In this document: piece after piece, positions 3,801 to 63,375 of the stretch | Numbering within the stretch: the first letter of the stretch is position 1 | Layout of the letters: every line of letters starts with the position of its first letter | Assembly (NCBI RefSeq): GCF_006345805.1 | Contig: NC_043015.1 | Location: forward strand, 28,892,001 to 28,956,000 | Reading direction: 5' to 3' | Source: Octopus sinensis | Taxonomy: Eukaryota | Length of the DNA stretch: 64,000 nucleotides | The notes under the pieces: generated by a model | Databases searched by the model: none | Told to the model about the DNA's origin: nothing | Seen by the model: the letters and a program-made list of their open reading frames with translations, nothing else | Translations under genes and position numbers: made by a program

Positions 3801-4257
3801 ACAGTTTGTGGATTAACAAAACTTGAATGTAATTCATTAAATCTATTGTACCTTCTAGTATTTAAAAATATCTAAGTATATTTTCATATAGTCCCACAGT
3901 ATTTTCTGTTTCTTGTTTACTATTGAGCTAGTAATTGTCTGTTTTAGCCTGCTTTCTATGGCTTAATGTCAGAACATTTTACAGAGTGTAACAGGGGTGC
4001 TTTTTACATGGCACCAGCACCAAAATTATTGTTGATAATTAGATACATGTACACACATTTGAAAATATAAATTTTGTTATGTTTTTATATATCACCATAC
4101 AGTAACGAGGACTTGCATTCACAATTTGCTTTATTAACCCTTTAGTATTTGATCTGGCCGTATCCAACTCAAATATTCTGCACATTTTAAGTTCAAACTG
4201 GCTGTATCTAACCTCTCACACTTACCCTAAAATGTCATTCTAAAAACAAACAATCAT

Positions 4258-4678
4258 AGGTGCAGGAGTGGCTGTGTGGTAAGTAGCTTGCTAACCAACC
4301 ACATGGTTCCGGGTTCAGTCCCACTGCGTGGTACCTTGGGCAAGTGTCTTCTGCTATAGCCGCGGGCCGACCAATGCCTTGTGAGTGGATTTGGTAGACG
4401 GAAACTGAAAGAAGCCTGTCGTATATATGTATATATATGTATATGTATGTGTGTGTGTGTGTGTGTGTGTATGTGTTTGTGTGTCTGTGTTTGTCTCCCT
4501 AGCATTGCTTGACAACCGATGCTGGTGTGTTTACGTCCCCGCCACCTAGCGGTTCGGCAAAAGAGACCGATAGAATAATTACTGGGCTTACAAAGAATAA
4601 GTCCCGGGGTTGATTTGCTTGACTAAAGGCAGTGCTCCAGCATGGCCACAGTCAAATGACTGAAACAAGTAAAAGAGC
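4258..4678 (+). mobile_element. S1 SINE inserted into a minus-strand family B MITE (about 4134-4760)
   Basis: S1 head and tail present; the flanks are the two halves of a degenerate family B MITE. Confidence 0.8.
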
Positions 4679-5054
4679 AATCACATAATCAAAGTCCTGA
4701 AACTGAGATAATGCATAATTAATAAAAAAATGTCATTTGACAGGATAAAGATTAGCCTTTAGGTGTAAATGGAGCTTGTTTTTGTTGTAGAAAACATGCC
4801 AAATGAGATTGGGGTCTGGTGCAGCCCTTCAACTTAGCAGCCGTGGTCAAACCATCCAGTCCATGCCAGCATGGACAACGGACATTAAATGATGTTGATG
4901 ATACTCTATCAAATTTAATGCCTATTTCTTTACATTGTTTTGAATTATGCATTATCTTGTAGCTTTCGGATTTTGGTGGTGTGATTGTTTATTTTTGCAA
5001 TGACATTGTAGGGTAGATGTGATGGGCCAGTTTGAACGTAGAGCAAGGTAGAAT

Positions 5055-7760: not shown

Positions 7761-7987
7761 GTAGCTGGGAAATTACTGTAACCACTGGACTGGGTGTCAG
7801 CCCCCTTACAAGCAGCATTCCTTTAGCTAAGTAAATCAGAGCTCATAAAATTAACTGCCAATAAGATGCCTGTGGTGAATATGGGCCTCATCTTGAGTTA
7901 GTCCGGTAATAACCATTTCACCACCTTATTTAAGCCAGTTAGCAAAATAAATCAAGTATTTTATAACTATACTAACAGTGGCGTATA

Positions 7988-8385
7988 GGCGTAGGAGTGG
8001 CTGTGTGGTAAGTAGCTTGCTTACCAACCACATGGTTCCGGGTTCAGTCCCACTGCGTAGTGGCACCTTGGGAAAGTGTCTTCTCCTATAGCCTCGGGCC
8101 GACCAAAGCCTTGTGAGTGGATTTGGTAGACAGAAACTGAAAGAAGCCCGTCGTATATATGTATATATATGTGTGTTTGTGTGTTGTGTTTGCCCCCCCC
8201 CCCATCGCTTGACAACCGGTGCTGGTGTGTTTATGTCCCCGTAACTTAGCGGTTCGGCAAAAGAGACTGATAGAATAAGTACTAGCCTTAGAAAAAAGAA
8301 TAAGTCCTGGGGTCGATTTCCTTGACTAAAGGCGGTGCTCCAGCATGGCCGCAGTCAAATGACTGAAACAAGTAAATAAATAAAT
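7988..8385 (+). mobile_element. S1 SINE
   Basis: Full-length match to other S1 copies. Confidence 0.85.
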
Positions 8386-13286: not shown

Positions 13287-14206
13287 TGTACAATAAATTG
13301 AGTATACTTCTAAAATACACAAAATATTCTAAGTCTTTTTATACAATTCCTAATAATGTTTAATTATAGAAATATAATAGGGGATTTTTTTAAAGCATTG
13401 AATGACTCTGAGGGTCCGGTAGAAGGAACTAGGTATCAAAGAAGTCTGCCAGCATTGCCAGGTCATAGTGCTAGTCAGTATATAAATGTACTATCTTTGA
13501 GAAGAATAGGTTTAATCTTTCTTTTGAAGCATAAGGTTATGTCTTGATATTACTTTGTGGTAATCCTGGTTCATATTTTTTGACAAGAACTTGTCATTTG
13601 AAATACTTCTAATAACCTATAGATAATATTCCCTTAAAGTACTTTACTACATCAGATTTATCTCTATATTACACAATAAGATGGTTGGTTGTGCTGTATG
13701 GAATTTTTTAGTCAGTGTTTGCTAACATTTGTGTTGTGGAAAACTGTTTCATTATTTAGGCTTTCATAACTGTTCATCTATTAATATTAAAGTCTTTCCA
13801 TTTCATATATATATGTATATAATATATATAATATATATATATATATAATGTCTACAGACAAGACTATTAACATACATTAATTCAATACTCTAAGATACTA
13901 TGAGAGAATGTAGCTCGTTGGCAAGCAGTGTAAGTACAATATAATTGATGAATATTTTGTTAGCTTGCCCTATTGATTCTTAAAATGCATAATCAACAGT
14001 CTACTGAGTAATATTCCAATATCCATATTACTTTCAAACAGCTTTCTAGAAAAGTACTGATAATAACAGTTCTACATGACTATTCCACGTTTTCTGCTTT
14101 AGCTATATAGACGTAGTATACTTCTCATTGTTGTAAGCAAAATATACTTTTCATTATTACCACTATATACTTTTCATCATTAACAGTATACTTTCATTAT
14201 AAACAT

Positions 14207-14633
14207 AGGCGCAGGAGTGGCTGTGTGGTAAGTAGCTTGCTTACCAACCACACGGTTCCGGGTTCAGTCCCACTGCGTGGCACCTTGAGCAAGTGTCTTC
14301 TACTATAGCCTCGGGCCGACCAAAGCCTTTTGAGTGGATTTGGTAGACGGAAACTGAAAGAAGCCCGTCGTGTGTATATATATATATATATATATAGATG
14401 ATTGTGCGTGTGTGTCTGTGTTTGTCCCCCTAGCATTGCTTGACAACCGATGCTGGTGTGTTTACGTCCCCGTTACTTAGCAGTTCGGCAAAAGAGACCG
14501 ATAGAATAAGTACTGGGCTTACAAAACAGAGAATAAGTCCTGGGGTCAAGTTGCTCGACTAAAGGCGGTGCTCCAGCATGGCCGCAGTCAAATGACTGAA
14601 ACTAGTAAAAGCGAGTAAAAGAGAGTAAAGAGT
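14207..14633 (+). mobile_element. S1 SINE
   Basis: Full-length match to other S1 copies. Confidence 0.85.
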
Positions 14634-18090: not shown

Positions 18091-18708
18091 TTAACCCTTT
18101 TGATACCAACCCGGCCAAAACCGCCTCTGGCTCTGTAGTACAAATGTCTTGTTTTCATAAGTCATCATCATCATTTAACATCTGCTTTCTATGCTGGCAT
18201 GGGTTGGATGGTTCAACTGGGGTCTGGGAAGCCAAGAGGCTGCCCCAGGCTCCAGTCTGATCTGGCAGTGTTTCTACAGCTGGATGCCCTTCCTAACGCC
18301 AACCACTCCGAAAGTGTAGTGGGTGCTTTTTACGTGCCACCGGCACAGTGGCCAGATGAGGCTGGCAAACGGCCACATATGGATGGTGCTTTTTACATGC
18401 CACCGGCACGGGGACCAGTCGAAGCTGCCAATGGCCACAGTCGGATGGTGCCTTTTATGTGCCACCGGCACGGAGGCCAGTCGGCCGGCACTGGCTATGG
18501 CCACGTTTGGATGGTTCTCTTACGTGCCACCGGCACTGGTATCACAGCTAATTGAATTAAAATCTTCCACCAAACCTTAGTCACAATTTATGTTCCCAAC
18601 ACTAGCTCAATGGTAACTAAGTTATTTTACTAAATTCTTTGTTATATTTAAAATAAATTGAATGAAACACAGAGCATCTCAAAATAAATACGGTAACGAA
18701 AGGGTTAA
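18091..18708 (-). mobile_element. piggyBac MITE family A interrupted by R3 (about 18160-18545); a family B MITE abuts at 18705-18912
   Basis: TTAA at both ends, family A body in reverse; the following family B copy starts at the same TTAA. Confidence 0.8.
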
Positions 18709-19388: not shown

Positions 19389-19561
19389 CGTGTTTACAAT
19401 TTGGTAGCAGTAAATTAAATATCTTAATTGTTCCAGTAACTCATGACGATTATTTTAACCCAAGGTTGTTAACGTCTACTGGGGCAGCTGAAGTGATAAA
19501 TAGTCTTTTGCTTTGGGTTTCAATATTTTTTCCTCTGTTGGTTGTATTAACAAACGTTTAG

Positions 19562-19965
19562 TCGCAGGAGTGGCTGTGTGGTAAGTAGCTTGCCTACCAA
19601 CCACATGGTTCTGGGTTCAGTCCCACTGCGTGGCATCTTGGGCAAGTGTCTTCTGCTATAGCCTCGGGCCGACCAATGCCTTGTGAGTGGATTTTGTAGA
19701 CGGAAACTGAAAAAAGCCTGTCGTATATATGTATATGTATGTATGTATGTATATGTTTGTGTGTCTGTGTTTGTCCCCCTAGCATTGCTTGACAACCGAT
19801 GCTGGTGTGTTTACGTCCCCGTCACATAGCGGTTCAGCAAAAGAGACCGATAGAATAAGTACTGGACTTACAACGAATAAGTCCCGGGGTCGATTTGCTC
19901 GACTAAAGGCGGTGCTCCAGCATGGCCACAGTCAAATGACTGAAAAGAGTAAAAGAGTAAAAAGA
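19562..19965 (+). mobile_element. S1 SINE
   Basis: Full-length match to other S1 copies. Confidence 0.85.
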
Positions 19966-20267: not shown

Positions 20268-20720
20268 ATCATCATCATCGTTTAAGCATGGGTTGGACGG
20301 TTCGACCGGGGTCTGGGAAGCCAGGAGGCTGTACCAGGCTCCAGTCTGATCTGGCAGTGTTACTACAGCTGGATGCCCTTCCTAACGCCAACCACTCCAT
20401 GAGTGTAGTGGGTGCTTTTTACGTGCCACTGGCTCAGGTGCCAGGGGAGGCTGGAAATAGCCACGATTGGTTGGTGCTTTTTATGTGCCACTGACAGGGA
20501 AGCCAGTCAAGGCGGTGCTGGCATCAGCCACATATGGATGGTGCTTTTTAGGTTCCACCAGCACAGGTGCCAGGGTAGGCTGGCAATGGCCACGATTGGT
20601 TGGTGCTTTTTACGTGCCACCGGCACGGAAGCCAGTCAAGGCGGCGCTGGCATCGGCCACATATGGATGGTGCTTTTTAGGTGCCAGGGTAGGCTGGCAA
20701 CGGCCACTAACGGTTGGTGA
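20268..20720 (-). mobile_element. R3 element
   Basis: Family body and tandem GGTGCTTTT modules. Confidence 0.75.
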
Positions 20721-26672: not shown

Positions 26673-26804
26673 AGAGAAAGGGAAGATAAAAATCAGACTT
26701 TTCTTTTCATTTTTTGATTTGTAAATTTAGACAACTTTAGTTGATCTTGTCTGGTATTTTTCTTTTCCTTTCTATTATTATTTTTTTTTTATTTCCATGC
26801 CTAG

Positions 26805-27364
26805 GTTGCCGGTATGGCTGTATCTGTCACTTGTGTTGGATTTCAGAGAATAATGAAGAATTAACTAAGCCTTGTGCAATTTCTACTAAGGCCTGTGATA
26901 AAGAATATTGCCGTTTAGGTTGCATCTGTGATAACAATGAAAATACAAAGTTGAAAGTAGACTGTGCGAAACCTTGTTGTGAGTTGACGACCTGTTGCTG
27001 TGATTCCCCCACTAAGAACTTGCCAACCGAGTCCAAGAAATCAAGCCCCCCTAAAAATTTAGATTGCAACAAGAATGAAACTGCTAAGAGTCCGTTGACG
27101 TCACCTGCATCTAACGAGTGTGTCGATGAGAATTCTTGCTCTTCTGTGCAAGACAAAGACAAGCTAACTTCTGCTGACAATACACCGTCGAACAAAGAGG
27201 ATACCAGTTCCAACAAAAGCAAACTTCCCAAGAAGGACAAATATGCTTCGCTCCCCAGACGGCAAATGACTCATCGAACAGCCAAGAATTTAGATGCTAT
27301 CAGCAGAAAAGCGATGATGTTTTATGAAACGAGTGAAATGTATCATTTGAAAAAAAAGAGGAAT
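26805..27364 (+). CDS. MGA: MGA-like exon encoding the Cys-rich MGA conserved (DUF4801-type) domain
   Basis: atttccatgcctag acceptor, AAT|gttagt donor, phase 1 to 0; GCRYGCICHLC...CDKEYCRLGCIC matches the CRLGCVC signature of MGA proteins. Confidence 0.9.
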
Positions 27365-28264
27365 GTTAGTATCTTCCTGAATTTCTTTCCATCTATTCTT
27401 CCGATTTCCTCTGTTGGAATTTGAAACACTTAAAGGGGTTATTGTTAAGTTTACTAGGGTTGAGCTAAACAATTCATTTGTAACTATTTCACTTTGTATC
27501 ACCATGTCTTTCACACCATTCCTTTTAGAAATCTGAAAAATTTGTGTCACCGTCTTTATCATCATTGTTTTAACATCCACTCATCCATGCTTGTATGGGT
27601 AGGACAACTACCAAACCGTATCCTATAACAGTTATCAATGTGCTAATTAATGTTAACTAATTAGCCTTTTAGTTTGGGTCATTCACCCCTTAGAGTTTGC
27701 TGTTTTAAGCTTTAGAACTTTAAAAACATGATTGCTAATTGAAAAATGCTATATTGAGTGCCAATACATTTGGTCTCTTTTTGACATATTTATATCGTAT
27801 GACATCATTATAATAGATCAACATCATTCATAATTTAGCTTTCAAATCAGAGGGGTTTGAGCCCTGTGGTCTTCAAAAATGACTTAATGTTACTTTGCTA
27901 AGGAAATCTTGGCACTTTTATAAAGAATACATGGCTTCCATTCCTCCTCTGTCTTTCAGGAGGACACATTTAAGCTCTTGAATAGTGCATCCTATGTCTT
28001 TTCGCATTCTCTACCCTGTTTACCATGACATGGTTTCCACAGAAAAATATCACCTCCTAGCACCTCTTTGATAGGCACTAACCAATAAATCTCAGTCTCT
28101 GTGATACATGAGATGTCTTTGGTATGGCTTTTTGATAGTCATGTGTTTATGGTAAATATAAATAAAACGAAATTATATTGAAGACTGTCTCATCACATAC
28201 ATTGAATGTATAAACATTGATTTTAAGAGAATATTTACCCTTCACATTAATTAATTACATACTA

Positions 28265-28615: not shown

Positions 28616-29242
28616 TTAATGACCAGAGGTAGAGAATGAAGGCAATGGGAGTTACTTTTGCCATTCACAAATTATATTTGCTGTGTTAAGTGAAATGGCA
28701 ATGACAACATCAAACCAAGATCATGCAATCAATTTGTGAGGAAATCACCACGTTTGTTTAGTGAATGAAGCATTATTAGATATCTTGAATAAAACGAGTG
28801 TTAATATACTGGATAAAGCATCAGATATGGTATTGGATATATTGGATATGATATGAAATATAGTATTGCTAAATATGTTGCATAGAGAATCTTAGAAATA
28901 TATTGGATATCTCAGCTCTAAATAATATATAAGATAAAGTATTATATCATCAGAAACATTTAGAATTCTCATTCAACTTTAAATCTGCTGAACTTAGAAG
29001 TCTTTTATCATTGGTATTTATCTTGGCACTTTACATTTTTGAATCTATCTACAACGTACACTGTACATTATCTTTCTCTAGTCTTCACTGACATGTTATC
29101 TTCTTTTTTAAATGCATGAAATAATTGTCAATTGGTATACATGAATTTGTATGCTAGCATGGTATTTTGAGAGTTAGGAGTTATATTCATTAGGCATTAG
29201 GACTGTTTTATACACACGTACATATATATATATATATACATA

Positions 29243-29411
29243 AAGCACCCACTACACTCACGGAGTGGTTGGCGTTAGGAAGGGCATCCAGCCGTAGAAA
29301 CACTGCCAGATTTGACTGGGCCTGATGAAGCCTTCTGGCTTCACAGACCCCAGTAGAACCGTCCAACCCATGCTAGCATGGAAAACGGACGCTAAACGAC
29401 GATGATGATGA

Positions 29412-29415
<4 letters not shown>
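29243..29415 (+). mobile_element. R3 fragment between (TA)n tracts
   Basis: Family body and (GAT)n tail. Confidence 0.7.
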
Positions 29416-29455
<40 letters not shown>

Positions 29456-43719: not shown

Positions 43720-44195
43720 GTAAGTCTCTCGAATAATAATCTTCCATGTAACATTTCTCAAATTTCATTAATATGTTTTGTTTGCTTTAGCTTATTAACT
43801 GCCACATGTACCACTGCTGGTTCATCTCAGACTTCGCACAACCACCCATATTTTCTGCAGCCAGATGCTCTTCCTGTCACACACACTCCCTACTGGTGGT
43901 ACATTTTCATAACCTGAGAAAATGCTTTATTCTGTATCTTTGACATGGATTTGTAGGATATCTAAATAACATGAAATGATAAATTTTTAGCATGAAATTC
44001 TAAAAGTTTAATTATGAAAAGCTCAGTTTTTATAGGTTCAGGAATGCCAGTATGGTAAGAAGCTTGCTTCCCAACCACATGGCTCTGGGTTCAGTCCCAC
44101 TGCATGGCACCTTCGGCAAGCGTCTTCTACTATAGCCTTGGGCTGACCAAAACTTTGGGAGTGGATTTGGTAGACGGAAACTGGAAGAAGCCCAT

Positions 44196-44263
<68 letters not shown>

Positions 44264-45157: not shown

Positions 45158-45375
45158 GTTGGTGATATTCCTCTTTTATGAAGCACTGTTTTTTATTTTG
45201 TTGAAACCGAATTATTGCAACAACTAAATACCAATAATACATAAAGGTTGTCAGATTTTTACAACATTAACTCGCACTAGACTTGGTTCATAGACATATG
45301 GTAAAAACATTGATGTACTTATAAATATAGGCAAATATATCTATGTAATTACTGGTATATGTATTTGTGTATGTA

Positions 45376-45549
45376 GGTGCAGGCATGGCTGTGTGGCATG
45401 AAGCTTGCTTTCCAACCACATGGTGGTAGGTTCAGTCCTTCTGTGTGACATCTTGGGCAAGTGTCTTCTATTACAGCCTTGGGATGACCAAAGCCTTGTG
45501 AGTGGATTTGGTAGCTGGAAACTGAAAGAAGCCTGTCATATATATATAT

Positions 45550-45584
<35 letters not shown>

Positions 45585-45785
45585 TTATTTATGCGTATGT
45601 GTCTTTGTGTTTGTAAACCCCACCTCCTACCATCACTTGGCAACCGGTGTTGGTGTGTTTATGTCCTCGTAACTTAGCAGGGACATAAAAAGAATAAGTC
45701 CTGGGATCAGTTTCTTCGACTAAAAAGCCCTTAATAGGCAGTGCTCCAGCATGGTCACAGTCAGATGACTGAAACAAATAAAAGA
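45376..45785 (+). mobile_element. S1 SINE (diverged)
   Basis: Family head, microsatellite and tail. Confidence 0.8.
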
Positions 45786-49899: not shown

Positions 49900-50422
49900 A
49901 CATCAATTCATATTAGAGTTGATAAAATAATTTCCTATTGTATACTGAGTCAATCTTCCATGTATCTTCCTCTGCACTGATCTTTGTGGCTATGAAAAAA
50001 ACCAATTACTTGAATTCATCATCAGCAACCCCTGGACATTACTCAGTTTCCACAGCATACAAGTGACCCAGATCACAACGCTCCACACCTGAACAGGACA
50101 CCGGTCAATTGCAGGGTTATTTGTTTAGAACAGTGGACTGGAACAATTTGAAGTGAAGTGTTTTGCTCAAGAATGTAATGCACTGCCCTGTCCAGGAATT
50201 GAAACCATGATCTTGTAATCATGACTGCAACGTCCTAACCAGCTAGGCCATGCATCTTCACCTATTTGGTTTCCAGCAATTACTCTCTGAAGAGTTTTCA
50301 GAGTTTCTTAGATTTGAAGGATGAAGATATTAAAGATAAATGTTGATTTTAAATATTCCCTCCTTATTAATGTTTTTTTTTTTTCAAACTTTATTGGAGT
50401 GTGTTGTTCTTTTTTTAAACAG

Positions 50423-50901
50423 GAGAATTATATGAAATCGGTTACGTCGAATCGGAGATCAATAAAATTCTTGATGACGCTGGCTTACCATTTGACATGT
50501 ACAAACCTCCAGTGATATCCACGGCACAGACGTATGAAGACATGGGATCTCCTCTCAAGTTCGTTCCATCAAATCATCCCTCAACTTTCGAATGTCAGAT
50601 AATCTCTGACGAAGACTGCGACGTCGATGTGGTCTCCGAGACCACAACAGTTCCTCAGAACCAAATCCTGATGGCACAGTGTCGCCAACCTACACCAAAC
50701 TGCAATGAACCTATTAGCAATGACGATGATGTCATTATACTCTCACCAGAATGGGACGCAGAACAGAAAATACCAGAATTCGACACTAATTCCTCCACAC
50801 TTATGATTGATAGTGTTTTCAGCCTGGCTCCAGAAAACTACGAGAACTTCAGTACGTCATATAACATCCCTGATGATACACAAATCATCCAACCGGATTA
50901 A
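50423..50901 (+). CDS. MGA: MGA-like terminal exon (GELYEIGYVESEINKILDDAGLPFDMYKPP...QIIQPD*)
   Basis: ttttttaaacag acceptor, phase 1, open to TAA at 50899-50901; the 14 exons total 3531 nt, a multiple of 3. Confidence 0.85.
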
Positions 50902-53580: not shown

Positions 53581-54017
53581 TATATATATATACATACATA
53601 CATAGTGTTTTAAAAATTTTTTACAAATTTATCTTAGACGATGCTGAGTAATATTAAAACTGATGCTATAAATAATGGTAGTAATTAATATTTATAGTTC
53701 TTTTAATTGTAAACAAAGCAATTAGTAAAAAAATTAAAATTTTTTTTTTTCAGGTAGTTTTTGTGAATTGTGGTTTTGATGAAAACGAAGAAAGACTTAC
53801 AAATTAACATTTCTTTTTGTGTAAATAACCTGAGGTGTAATTAACATTGAAATAAGATCTACAATGCATGTTGATTAATCTTACATTTCCGTTTATGCAC
53901 CACATGCCAACTTCTAATGGTCATAAATTATTTTGAATCATTTGTCTTCGAATATTGATTTGAAATTATGAAAATAGTTGGTCCTAAAAAAGAAACACAC
54001 ACACACAAAAGTACAGC

Positions 54018-54320
54018 AAACTCCTGTCCCCTCACACCATCAAGCAAAGTCCTGTCCCCCCAAACCCCCCAAAATACATCAAACTCCTGTCCCCCCCAAA
54101 CCCCCCAAAATACATCAAACTCCTGTCCCCTCCCCCATACCCCCCAAAATACATCAAACTCCTGTCCCCCCACCCCCCAAAATACATCAAACTCCTGTCC
54201 CCCCACACTCCCAAAAATACATCAAACTCCTGTCCCCCCAAACCCCCCAAAATACATCAAACTCCTGTCCCCCCCCACACACCCAAAAATACATCAAACT
54301 CCTGTCCCCACAAAATACAT
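54018..54320. repeat. C-rich minisatellite, about 9 units of 28-39 bp
   Basis: Unit AAACTCCTGTCCCCCCAAACCCCCCAAAATACATC at 54018, 54046, 54081, 54117, 54156, 54189, 54224, 54259 and 54296. Confidence 0.95.
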
Positions 54321-54783
54321 AATCACAGTAGGATCTTATTTGCGCTCTCTCCTTACGAATTCAAGGCTTAGTATGTTTAAGAAGGCAACATTAATTAATG
54401 TAATTTGACATGAATGATCAAAATATTTTATGACGATTTCGTGTATTTAGGAATATCCAGAATTCATCCCCATTTCTCTGTGTGTAACAAGCGTAACTAT
54501 TGAGAAGTCTTTGGTCCGCAGAGTTTAGTGACATTCACCTGTTCCTCCCAAACTATCGTAGCATTTATGTTGTAGGAAGTTGTGTAATTTTCTAACAGCT
54601 TTTATAACTAATCTTGTTTCAGGTGCCATTTAGCAAATTATCAACATTGATTATTCATGACAATGTCAACCATTCTTACGTTATTGCAGCTGCCTTAAGT
54701 CCTAAAACCTCATGCTCTTGTAAGTAATTAATTTCTCCTTGTAAATAAGTCCGTGTGTTGTCAGCTCTTTACTTGTATGAGCT

Positions 54784-55978: not shown

Positions 55979-56293
55979 CACTTTGACCGACCAGTCCGTC
56001 AGGCGTCCATTTGACACCACTGGTCACAGCACGCTGTCCACTCCTCTCTGGATCGCGCCTTTCTCATCCACGTGATCCCAATCGCCCTCCTGAAATCGTA
56101 ACTCCACCGTCGTGGAGGTCTTCCGGGTGTTATATGGTAGTGAAACATGGGCTACCACAAAGAGAGAAGAGCAAAGACTGGTAACGGCTCAAAGAGCCAT
56201 GGAAAGGTCAATGCTTGGTATCTCGTTGAGAGAGCACATAAGTAGCGAGATCATCAGAAAGAAGTCCGGCGTGAGAGATGTCATCGCAGCAAG
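55978..56293. mobile_element. 5'-inverted RTE LINE fragment
   Basis: 56127-56293 plus strand: VLYGSETW...AQRAMERSMLGISLREHI..EIIRKKSGVRDVI. 56126-55978 minus strand: GRPPRRWSY...GITWMRKARSREEW..*. Both are RTE RT C-terminal motifs; flanked by (TA)n. Confidence 0.8.
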
Positions 56294-56305
56294 TATATAT
56301 ATATA

Positions 56306-56665
56306 TAGCTTGCTAACCAGCCACATGGTTCAGTCCCACTGCGTGGCATCTTGGGCAAGTGTCTTCTGCTATAGCCCCAGGCCGACCAATGCCTTGTGAG
56401 TGGATTTGGTAGACGGAAACTGAAAGAAGCCTGTCGTATATATGTATGTGCGTGTATGTTTGTGTTTGTGTTTGTCCCCCTAGCATTGCTTGACAACCGA
56501 TGCTGGTGTGTTTATGTCTCCGTCACTTAGCGGTTTGGCAAAATAGACCGATAGAATAAGTACTGGGCTTACAAAGAATAAGTCCCGGGGTCGAGTTGCT
56601 CGATTAAAGGCGGTGCTCCAGCATGGCCGCAGTCAAATGACTGAAACAAGGAAAAGGGTAAAGAG
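56306..56665 (+). mobile_element. S1 SINE, 5' truncated
   Basis: Family body and tail. Confidence 0.8.
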
Positions 56666-58933: not shown

Positions 58934-59591
58934 TGCATACATATAGATTATATATACACGTATACGTACATATATGCATACATATCTATATAAACATGTA
59001 TATACATGCAATATATATATATATACACACACACACATATCTATATATACACATATAAATACATATATATATACACACACACAAATTATTCGGTTGCGAT
59101 AATAAAACTCCAAGCTTAGGATGTCGGGATGGAAATATGCTCCAGCATCTGGTAGGTTATTAAGACAATCAAAAAATGTATTTATATGTATATATATATA
59201 TATATATACACACACATATACAAGTACACATATATATACATGTATAGTTGAAGATAGACGTGGAAATAGCACAGTTGTAAGTCTAAGACATTTTCAATTT
59301 AAGATGGAATTTAATTAAAAAAAACTATATAAAATGAAAATTATACAAAGAGTTAAATTCTCTCTTAAATTGAAATGTCTTGGATTTATTTCTGTACTGT
59401 TTCCACCTCCATCTTATATATATACATACATACATACATATAGATACCTACGTGTATGTGTCTGTATGTATATATATATATACACATATAAACATATTTG
59501 GAAATGGATGACTGGCCTTCAATCAAATATAAATTATATATGCATACATATATATATATACACACATATATATATATATATGTATATATAC

Positions 59592-59597
59592 TTTATT
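59592..59597 (-). promoter_or_regulatory. Candidate ECM29 polyadenylation signal inside the palindrome arm
   Basis: First minus-strand AATAAA downstream of the ECM29 stop at 60320 (ATTAAA variants lie near 60084 and 59933). Confidence 0.45.
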
Positions 59598-59668
59598 TTA
59601 AGCAGCAGAAAATTCAACAAAATCTGTTACTCTGAGTTTCTCGTTGCCGTTCATGAGACAGTTTTTGC

Positions 59669-59713
59669 AAACTGTCTGATGAACGGCAACGAGAAACTCA
59701 GAGTAACAGATTT
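59669..59713 (+). ncRNA. Minimal type-I hammerhead ribozyme motif (Penelope-like element type)
   Basis: Stem I CTGT(59672-75)/ACAG(59706-09), core CTGATGA(59676-82), short stem II CG-GCAA-CG, GAAA(59693-96), stem III ACT/AGT with a 3-nt loop, cleavage triplet GUA(59703-05). The 10.1-11.1 pair is A.A rather than Watson-Crick. Confidence 0.65.
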
Positions 59714-60319
59714 TGTTGAATTTTCTGCTGCTTAAAATAAAGCATATTACTCTACCACTGGTATTTGAGTACTCTTTTTTCCACCTTGTTTCACATTTAT
59801 GTGTTTACTCCGGTCTATATGTATATATATATATACATACATACACACACATACATGAATATACATACATGCATATGTGTGTGTATATATATGTATACAT
59901 ACATACATACATTCTCCACATCTGTTAATATTTTAATAGCTATAAAAGAATAAGAGATTCGTCTAGTGGATATGAAATATTATAAATAGTTATCGTATGA
60001 TAATTACTCTGTTCCTTTGAAGTTGAAAAAAAAAATCTTAATCGAATATCTAAACTAGGCAAGAAGTTCTGTACAATAAGACCTTTAATGACATGGGCTT
60101 AACGATAAAAGTAAGAACCACAGAATATGATTGCTATGATTCGTTAACCCATCTAAGTAAACGATGAAAAATTGGAACACATAAATATTACATATATATA
60201 TATATACATTTATATATGCAGTATAAAATGTAAAATAATGTTCCACAGATTTATGTGATGGTATTGTCTGTGTATAAAAGACAGCTAGCTGGGTGTGTAT
60301 ATGTAGCTACCTAAAGTGA

Positions 60320-60468
60320 TCAGGAGATCTCCATGCTGGGTTTTAGCAACGAGGCCACATCGACTGCCTTCTGGTGCATCTCACTCTTATCATTCTCCAT
60401 GAATGGGGTCAGGCTGTTCATTAACTCTTCAGATAATTTCTCTGTCAACAATGCTCTGTTATCCAAGT
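60320..60468 (-). CDS. ECPAS: ECM29/ECPAS terminal exon (DLDNRALLTEKLSEELMNSLTPFMENDKSEMHQKAVDVASLLKPSMEIS*)
   Basis: tttctttttctcttag acceptor, phase 1, TGA stop; resembles the recalled ECM29 C-terminus (LL.ESL..ME.D...E.Q.KA..L). Confidence 0.85.
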
Positions 60469-60499: not shown

Positions 60500-61035
60500 T
60501 AAGGCGAATTCGAAATTGAACTTCATCCGACGACTGGCACCCATGCCAACCGCCCTTCGTTGGACACTAAACTCTGCTTGCGAAGACCTGTTGGGGCAAG
60601 TGAAATTGAACCAAATTCGATGACTCCCACCTGTGCCAGTGGAGCACTAACAGCTCCATCCAAGCGGGATCACTGCCAGAGCAGCTGTCTGGCTTCTGTG
60701 GCGGTGGGCACATAAAAAGCACCATTTGAGCATGATCATTACCAGCATTGCTTTACTGGCACTTCTGCTGGTGGCACGTGACTGACTCCTGTGCTGGTGG
60801 CATGTAAAAAACACCATTTCGAGCGTAACCGTTGCTAGTACCACCTGACTGGCCTTCGTGCCGGTGACACGTAAAAGCACCCACTACACTCTCGGAGTGG
60901 TTGACATTAGGAAGGGTATCCAGCTGTAGAAACTCTGCCAGATCAAGATTGGAGCCTGGCGCAGCCATCTGGTTCTCTAGTCCTCAGTCAAATCGTCCAA
61001 CCCATGATAGCATGGAAAGCGGCCATTAAAGGAGG
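60500..61035 (+). mobile_element. R3 element, longest copy with 5' extension
   Basis: 5' extension ACACTAAACTCTGCTTGCGAAGACCTGTTGGGGCAAGTGAAAT, tandem modules, body and tail. Confidence 0.75.
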
Positions 61036-62293: not shown

Positions 62294-62335
62294 CTATTAT
62301 GAAAAAACAAAAAAAAACACAATTAACAAACAATA

Positions 62336-62710
62336 GGCGCAGGAGTGGCTGTGTGGTAAGTAGCTTGCTAACCAACCACATGGCATCTTGGGCAAGTGTC
62401 TTCTATTATAGCCTCGGGCTGACCAATGCCTTGTGAGTGGATTTGGTAGAAGGAAACTGAAAGAAGCCTGTCATATATATGTATATATATATATATATGT
62501 GTGTGTGTGTTTTGTCCCCCTAGCATTGCTTGACAACCGATGCTGGTGTGTTTACGTCCCCGTCACTTAGCGGTTCAGCAAAAAAGAGACCGATAGAATA
62601 AGTACTGGGCTTACAAAGAATAAGTCCCGGGGTCGATTCGCTCGACTAAAGGCGGTGCTCCAGCATGGCCGCAGTCAAATGACTGAAACAAGTAAAAGAG
62701 CAAAGAGAGT
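62336..62710 (+). mobile_element. S1 SINE with internal deletion in the head
   Basis: Family match. Confidence 0.85.
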
Positions 62711-63124
62711 ACAAACTTGAATCAGAAGCATGGAAGTGTTTGGTTAGCTTCAAGTGTAAACCACTGAATAAGAAATGTTCATTTTATGAGGAAAACAATA
62801 AAAATCAAACAGACTTTTCTCCCATAACCACACAGTTAAACAACTAAACCCAAAGATCCGTAGCTCACACCAAATATACCCACATTGTGCTCTCTAACAG
62901 ACAGTGATTTATTATTATTTGGTATACAGTGTGACTATCTGGCTATGTATTATTTTCCTTCGGTCCCTATTCTGTTTCTGCATGCTGGCAGACTCACCTC
63001 AGAAGTGAAGAAGCTATATGCAAAGTACACTAATGGCTATTTTCTGCAGTGACCTTAAGTTGTGTTCATCTCAGCACAGCGTTTGGAGTTAATGACGTTA
63101 TCAATATCAATGGAAATTGTAGTT

Positions 63125-63375
63125 GTGATACCAGTGCTGGTGGCACGTAAAAGAACCATCCGATCGTGGCCGTTGCCAGCCTTGCCTGGCACGTAAAAAG
63201 CACCCACTACACTCATGGAGTGGTTGGTGTTAGGAAGGGCATCCAGCTGTAGAAACGCTGTCAGATCAGACTGGGCCTGGTGCAGCCTCCTGGCTTCCCA
63301 GACCCTGGTTGAACCATCCAACCTGTGCTAGCATGGAGAACGGACGTTAAACGATGAAAATGATGATGATGAATA
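63125..63375 (+). mobile_element. R3 element
   Basis: Family body and (GAT)n tail. Confidence 0.7.

Follow-up and report, generated by a model that had tools for sequence, protein, structure and literature searches.

Does a nearly perfect palindrome carrying hammerhead ribozyme motifs, located past the stop codon of a conserved octopus gene, represent a functional mRNA 3' end or the product of a mobile element? This question is raised by a 64,000-nucleotide stretch of the Octopus sinensis genome (contig NC_043015.1, positions 28,892,001 to 28,956,000; hereafter the window, whose first letter is position 1), in which the palindrome at 59591-59742 follows the last coding exon of ECM29 on the minus strand. 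The original prediction held that a Penelope-type inverted repeat had been exapted as the ECM29 3' end, that the hammerhead on the mRNA strand had been selectively disabled, and that its antisense counterpart had been retained to cut read-through RNA from a convergent gene. The Penelope-type origin was confirmed: a young Penelope-like element (PLE) of the Hydra clade has left a mini-insertion of 223 bp (59591-59813) between TA-rich microsatellites, and the palindrome is an ordinary lineage-specific member of a known transposon kind. The locus is very probably explained as a recent, lineage-specific insertion into (TA)n, approximately 510-730 nt past the ECM29 stop codon.

The predicted geometry of the palindrome, comprising 74-bp arms, a 4-nt loop and one mismatch, was reproduced base by base. 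Walking outward from the centre, each position i of 59591-59664 pairs with a position j of 59669-59742 such that i + j = 119333, and the sole mismatch in the stem opposes G at 59655 to G at 59678. A repeat search reported 79-nt arms with 97% identity, the extra length corresponding to four TA-type bases outside the element that also pair. Folded as RNA, this part of the window adopts a single hairpin structure with -129.8 kcal/mol (z = -28 versus shuffled sequences), and the transcript of either strand forms such a hairpin at about -130 kcal/mol. A 34-nt hammerhead motif, for which no match is expected in a shuffled window, was found twice: at 59676-59709 on the plus strand with no mismatches, and at 59657-59624 on the minus strand with one. 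As predicted, the plus strand (59672-59709) carries an intact type-I hammerhead, CTGT-CTGATGA-ACGGCAACGA-GAAAC-TCAGA-GTA-ACAG, with the cleavage position after 59705. When the core was tested (C3-U4-G5-A6-N7-G8-A9...G12-A13-A14...A15.1/U16.1-H17), the plus-strand copy at 59676-59709 passed, whereas the minus-strand copy, which reads CTCATGA and has its predicted cleavage site 3' of 59628, failed at G5 owing to the predicted G5-to-C change at 59655.

The palindrome is beyond chance, yet it is not unique, being part of a repeat family with thousands of copies. In the 2.72-Gb genome of the same species, a 162-bp palindrome query identified at least 40 further places with 93-98% identity, and the 38-nt hammerhead, allowing up to two mismatches, yielded 2064 + 2104 matches (~4,170) compared with none for the reversed control. 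At least 531 mini-palindromes were counted, defined as head-to-head hammerhead pairs with 6-30 nt between their CTGT boxes. An alignment of 22 sibling copies with their flanks provided a consensus unit of 225 bp, composed of (TA)n, a 164-bp perfect palindrome centred on TTTTTGCAAAAA, the stretch CATATTACTCTACC...GTTTACTCCGG, and (TA)n again; all 22 siblings display this order of (TA)n, palindrome, 71-72-nt tail and (TA)n. The possibility that the palindrome is an assembly artefact was rejected, given the hundreds of loci with a like architecture, varied junctions and unique flanks.

A full unit of the element is represented by locus L024, a direct pair in which a partial upstream copy is followed by a full 3,344-bp unit. 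The hammerhead lies at the 3' end of this unit, in sense to its open reading frame (ORF) and ~30 nt before AATAAAG. The right arm of the window palindrome (59669-59742) is identical to the same 3' end, and the tail of the window insertion is exactly what comes after AATAAAG in the tandem (819-888 of L024). A second locus, L025, shows the same two ends with inverted arms of ~950 bp. In L024 the ORF spans 454 aa and is degraded in its N-terminal part; LYRDDG and a VVY...YTG...R...H block were recognised in it, and its protein has 1,089 homologues. Alongside YRDDG, further invariant reverse-transcriptase motifs are present. The full-length homologues (~711 aa) exhibit RMRWK/R, DKT, a CNCxxxxxC linker and a GIY-YIG-like C-terminus, and lack CCHH. 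A VVY...YxG...R...H...E...N block is invariant in 19 sequences and is seen in homologues P0002 and P0013; the identity of the GIY-YIG endonuclease (EN) was judged at this motif level. An AlphaFold 2 (AF2) model of the closest full-length homologue (predicted local distance difference test score, pLDDT, 84) includes a beta-beta-alpha-alpha-beta-alpha unit at residues 581-680, and a Foldseek search with this model returned 175 PDB matches at E<=1e-3, with the reverse transcriptases (RTs) of DRT9, TERT (telomerase), retrons and group II introns at the top.

These features correspond to the Hydra clade as described by Craig et al. (2021), namely RWK, DKT rather than DKG, a CxCX5C linker, a C-terminal GIY-YIG domain, no CCHH, canonical hammerheads and near-universal insertion into (TA)n, while for PLEs in general inverted copies lacking their 5' part have been reported, together with a short tail on one side (PMC8557442). 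The octopus element belongs to this clade. It shares with the published members a short single-ORF unit (3.3 kb in octopus) encoding RT and, at the C-terminus, a GIY-YIG domain, the same RWK, DKT and CxCX5C signatures without CCHH, a canonical hammerhead near the 3' end, a (TA)n target, and 5'-truncated copies, in tandem or inverted, that bear a tail on one side. In contrast, the octopus unit is slightly longer than the quoted '<3 kb', its tail of 71-72 nt exceeds the published 30-40 nt, and in L024, the copy examined, the N-terminal part of the ORF is degraded. In a metagenome contig from ENA (L030:465-600), whose PLE is 57% identical in protein, AATAAA likewise occurs ~30 nt past the hammerhead, and the beginning of the following unit (...ACTCTAC...GTATTGAGTACTTTTTTC...) resembles the octopus element; judged from this contig, the non-coding terminus of the PLE lineage appears conserved.

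The insertion is a miniature of the usual PLE product, in which an inverted 5'-truncated copy abuts a direct one that is followed by a short tail from the next tandem unit. Since both truncated copies start at the 5' edge of the 3'-terminal hammerhead of the element, a 74-bp palindrome with one hammerhead per strand results. Target-primed reverse transcription by the GIY-YIG/RT protein is the likely route, and the inverted arm may have been generated by template switching or snap-back. The tail, a feature described at one end of PLE insertions (PMC8557442), possibly extends to 59817 (TCTA) in the window copy.

Across the family, the inverted arms consistently stop no more than ~12 nt upstream of the hammerhead, and self-complementary GC/CTAG centres are frequent stopping points. 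These tight junctions suggest that the template RNA has a discrete 5' end immediately upstream of the hammerhead, or else that mini-palindromes are amplified as non-autonomous units. A TATA box setting the RNA 5' end at the palindrome junction was considered and dropped, the spacing of 13-18 nt being too short. On contig C1, inverted pairs are always arranged as minus then plus, that is, head-to-head, and fall into spacing classes of 48-61 nt, 124-269 nt and 1.3-3.3 kb; direct hammerhead pairs 3,345 nt apart are present as well. Eleven of the 15 short-range pairs on this contig have at most 23 nt between them, the next class beginning at 124 nt. Junctions of mini-palindromes (e.g., C1:71052594-71052631, C1:37702996-37703040 and C2:42800628-42800661) are varied and often self-complementary (GC, CTAG, CTAGAATCTAG). 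In some places, two or three mini-palindromes in one orientation lie ~1.0-1.25 kb apart (L009/L010 at C23:14669773-14671181; C2:79514752-79516989), which suggests local tandem duplication of an element-bearing segment or repeated hits on one microsatellite region.

The age of the window insertion was addressed at the orthologous locus of Octopus vulgaris, where the ECM29 gene (OX597832.1) was examined with 10 kb of downstream flank. The sequence past the O. vulgaris stop codon is collinear with the window, with 98.3% identity over the first 411 nt and 96% beyond, whereas the 223-bp element is absent and the microsatellite continuous. No copy of the hammerhead motif was found in 105 kb of this locus. 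Given this empty site, the insertion should be younger than the split of the two genomes, or polymorphic, and the ECM29 gene of a close relative evidently works without the element. The orthologous comparison therefore runs counter to the proposed exaptation.

The assignment of ECM29 and its minus-strand orientation proved right, because the last coding exon matches the C-terminal residues 1783-1831 of P0122 ('adapter and scaffold ECM29-like [Octopus vulgaris]') with 100% identity, and exons encoding ECM29_N (PF13001) occur on that strand at C19:29008060-29037995, 52-82 kb further along the same contig. For this gene and the convergent one, exon-protein identities were scored inside the exon only; Pfam and PDB searches with the short ECM29 exon translations were uninformative. 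The predicted spacing of the minus-strand cleavage site was likewise accurate, since it lies 692 nt from the stop codon and 30 nt before AATAAA (59597-59592). This AATAAA, within the stem, is the only canonical one past the stop. Two ATTAAA hexamers are situated upstream of the element in the mRNA sense, and both are kept in O. vulgaris. The GU-rich microsatellite behind the one at +383 is a plausible candidate downstream element, and the ATTAAA signals at +231 and +383 could terminate the ECM29 mRNA before it reaches the insertion.

Among the alternatives, the one that survives best, though unlikely, is that a neutral insertion now equips a species-specific long 3' untranslated region (3'UTR) of ECM29 with a distal poly(A) signal and 74 bp of perfect double-stranded RNA (dsRNA), the ribozyme being irrelevant. 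The AATAAA on the mRNA strand and the stability of the hairpin are in keeping with it, and long perfect duplexes are substrates of ADAR and Dicer. There is a small chance that use of this AATAAA would yield a long isoform whose last 150 nt form the 74-bp duplex and could be ADAR-edited or diced. Against this stand the conserved proximal ATTAAA signals and the observation that the first 411 nt are the best-conserved part of the flank, which fits a short UTR. In a test for microRNA (miRNA) precursors, the best match, MIR9555, scored 53.3 bits versus a threshold of 119, and all matches were sub-threshold generic hairpins. Inverted Alu pairs in 3'UTRs form dsRNA that is edited by ADAR. The octopus palindrome resembles them as a transposon-derived long perfect duplex, possibly in an extended 3'UTR, but Alu pairs consist of two insertions, whereas the palindrome is the product of a single event and its membership of the mRNA is putative. 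If this alternative were true, the insertion would provide a new post-transcriptional handle on a proteasome-scaffold gene in the octopus lineage, and several hundred hammerhead palindromes would seed dsRNA hairpins in cephalopod transcripts.

Comparison with the family consensus shows that the G5-to-C change is private to the window copy, since 22 of 22 siblings have CTGATGA on both arms, and that this copy is young: apart from the one substitution, it departs from the consensus only in that its central A-run is 2 nt shorter, and the siblings have 0-3 differences. Core alterations are frequent elsewhere: one sibling (L017) carries a G12-to-A change, and a pattern leaving eleven core positions free matched 2,388 copies, and 11 among the first 100 listed had an altered core. 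When mini-palindromes were anchored on a single intact CTGATGA box, the other box was mutated in 7 of ~57 loci from the first 100 rows (~12%), two of the seven bearing G5-to-A. A random single substitution in 225 bp would strike the core on the sense strand with a probability of ~5%. Because core mutation in one arm is widespread in the family, at a background of ~10-12%, the change is no sign of selection, and selective disabling of the sense ribozyme finds no support; that a single mutation might be chance had already been raised as a caveat with the prediction. G5-to-C is best interpreted as a neutral substitution, or possibly an assembly error. The latter explanation, in which the G/G mismatch, the shortened A-run or both would be assembly or polishing errors and both arms would really match the consensus, is quite improbable. 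A single base change together with a homopolymer-length change at a hairpin tip is typical of long-read errors, and the siblings otherwise differ little from the consensus, but other copies have comparable private substitutions and ~10% of copies genome-wide carry core changes.

The structure of the motif itself was compared with that of known hammerheads. Two metagenomic relatives carry it beside their ORFs, with a CUGAYGA/GAAA/UH core, helix III and its loop formed by palindromic ACUCNGAGU, a helix II of 2-3 bp that is capped by a tetraloop and has a mismatch as its closing pair, and a different helix I sequence. In helix I, 6 of 10 pairs show compensatory changes, and 83% of cells are paired versus 25-56% in slid controls (three sequences only). 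Helix III resembles that of PLE hammerheads, with 2 invariant bp and a palindromic loop. A single copy folded as a hammerhead (-4.0 kcal/mol) is less stable than an alternative minimum-energy structure (-9.6), while in a two-copy cofold the double hammerhead is itself the minimum-energy structure (-21.4 kcal/mol). The minimal hammerheads of PLE pseudo-long terminal repeats (pLTRs) described by Cervera & de la Pena (2014, PMC4209133) share the type-I topology, the CUGAUGA...GAAA...UH core, a short helix III with a palindromic loop (ACUCAGAGU), a predicted double-hammerhead dimer, and a position in terminal repeats, sense to the ORF, with thousands of copies per genome. They differ in having a helix II of 6-8 bp with G10.1-C11.1, compared with 2 bp, a GCAA loop and A.A closing in octopus (U.U in relatives); the octopus helix I is long, with 10 bp including one mismatch, and the octopus motif is scored by no Rfam hammerhead model. 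The folding results accord with the published view that the PLE hammerheads of metazoans work in dimeric form, and weakly, within tandem transcripts (PMC4209133). Each palindrome transcript contains a single sense hammerhead, always in the 3' arm, which therefore emerges after its perfect complement has been made. Neither the intact nor the G5C hammerhead would be expected to cleave within the palindrome, which would remove the selective pressure on which the original prediction relied.

Two further classes of hammerhead RNA were considered. Non-LTR retrozymes of metazoans (Cervera & de la Pena 2020, PMC7229834; Li et al. 2026 preprint, 10.64898/2026.07.22.740005) are likewise short, non-autonomous, PLE-derived elements with a pLTR hammerhead, but they are direct tandem repeats whose same-polarity hammerheads excise circular RNA, whereas the octopus copies lie head-to-head. 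Since each transcript of a head-to-head pair comprises one hammerhead and its complement, no monomer could be excised; the copies here are inverted, and no second same-strand hammerhead was found in the 64-kb window. Hammerheads in mRNA 3'UTRs, such as the discontinuous hammerhead of rodent Clec2, are conserved across species and cleave. The octopus copy resembles them in that its core lies between a stop codon and a poly(A) signal, but it is absent in the sister taxon, with neither presence nor conservation at the O. vulgaris locus; its sense-strand version is mutated, and a hairpin locks it in.

Exaptation as the ECM29 3' end, with the sense hammerhead disabled and the antisense one kept against read-through, is the least tenable of the explanations: the only canonical AATAAA within the stem and a single mismatch falling on G5 of the mRNA-strand ribozyme speak for it, but it was largely refuted already by the empty orthologous site and is rendered highly improbable by a mutation private to one copy among thousands, the family-wide and a priori rates of core change, the conserved upstream ATTAAA signals, the sequestration of both dimer-type hammerheads in the hairpin, and a convergent stop codon 8.7 kb distant.

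Several points weigh against the interpretation as a recent Hydra-clade insertion. No Rfam hammerhead family was detected at E<=1 for the window or E<=10 for the motif in its native context, the outputs being sub-threshold noise from miRNA and small nucleolar RNA (snoRNA) hairpins; PLE minimal hammerheads were, for their part, defined with RNAmotif descriptors rather than Rfam models (PMC4209133). Pfam scans of the PLE ORFs and full-length homologues revealed no significant family, neither RVT nor GIY-YIG, and a sequence/profile search of the PDB with the PLE alignment gave no match. Standard domain annotation is effectively blind to Hydra-clade PLE proteins. Because these models recognise neither the ORF nor the hammerhead, membership rests on motifs, fold search, covariation and published descriptors. 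The annotations stored in the search database for homologues P0002, P0007, P0013, P0023 and P0001 are PF26215 (HTH_animal) and PF28514 (DUF8422). In addition, helix II in octopus has just 2 bp closed by A.A, and catalysis by the consensus motif is a prediction. ECM29 may still use the AATAAA of the element, and loss in O. vulgaris instead of gain here is formally possible, though unparsimonious for a retroelement.

The remainder of the window contains a convergent gene and other repeats. The last coding exon of the former, which is the nearest coding exon on the plus strand, is 90% identical to residues 2626-2784, the C-terminus, of the uncharacterized O. bimaculoides protein LOC106878180 (2,784 aa), for which Pfam at 1e-3 returned no match. 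The proposed convergent plus-strand gene thus exists, but its identity as MGA is unconfirmed, the sole basis being a sub-threshold MGA_dom match at 26741-27424. Cutting of read-through RNA by the antisense hammerhead is not upheld either, as read-through would have to span 8.7 kb and the hammerhead is hairpin-locked and of the dimer type. An interspersed repeat of ~225-400 bp, probably a SINE-like (short interspersed nuclear element-like) sequence, has eight copies with 60-91% identity that give rise to spurious ORFs (...GTEPGTMWLVSKLLTTQPLL...), and one copy lies in the last ECM29 intron. A second repeat family generates ORF artefacts (...FLQLDALPNxNHSxSVVGAFY...) and has copies within the intronic part of ECM29 that directly precedes the last exon. 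Between the convergent stop codon and the palindrome, a proline-rich tandem repeat at 53959-54408 (...PPKIHQTPVPP...), open in three plus-strand frames, is probably a minisatellite.

Table 1. Features of the window around the ECM29 3' end, with the neighbouring gene and repeats.
Feature	Position	Strand	Remarks
ECM29, last coding exon	60320-60466	-	49 codons plus stop 60322-60320
ATTAAA, second, ECM29 strand	60084-60089	-	+231 nt from stop
ATTAAA, ECM29 strand	59932-59937	-	+383 nt from stop; followed by GU-rich microsatellite
First canonical AATAAA, ECM29 strand	59592-59597	-	+723 nt from stop; PLE-derived
(TA)n-rich microsatellite, left half of target	59527-59590		TRF period 2, 32.5 copies
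Left arm, inverted 5'-truncated PLE 3' end	59591-59664	-	Ends AATAAAG beside (TA)n; carries minus-strand hammerhead 59661-59624
Junction/loop TTGC	59665-59668		Family consensus is the perfect palindrome TTTTTGCAAAAA; window copy short of two A's
Right arm, direct 5'-truncated PLE 3' end	59669-59742	+	Intact hammerhead 59672-59709; AATAAA 59736-59741; in L024, sense to RT/EN ORF
Tail, 5'-most 71 nt of the next PLE unit	59743-59813	+	CATATTACTC...ACTCCGG; same tail in 22/22 siblings
TA/TG/TACA microsatellite, right half of target	59814-59912		Collinear with O. vulgaris
Convergent gene, last coding exon	50419-50901	+	Stop 50899-50901; 8.7 kb from palindrome
Interspersed repeat copies	4252-4680, 7984-8208, 14201-14611, 19554-19960, 44028-44252, 45369-45593, 56267-56661, 62304-62528
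Second repeat family copies	18197-18368, 20286-20457, 29242-29420, 60650-60985, 63055-63375

The claim of adaptive ribozyme inactivation is not upheld: roughly one in eight copies is expected to carry a single core mutation in one arm of its palindrome. What the locus adds is a record of a Hydra-clade PLE family in octopus that is abundant and very young (~4,000 hammerhead motifs; divergence among copies below 1%), and a clear-cut case, next to a conserved gene, of an insertion that O. vulgaris lacks. The tight clustering of the ends of the inverted arms just upstream of the hammerhead may inform how PLEs make inverted repeats.

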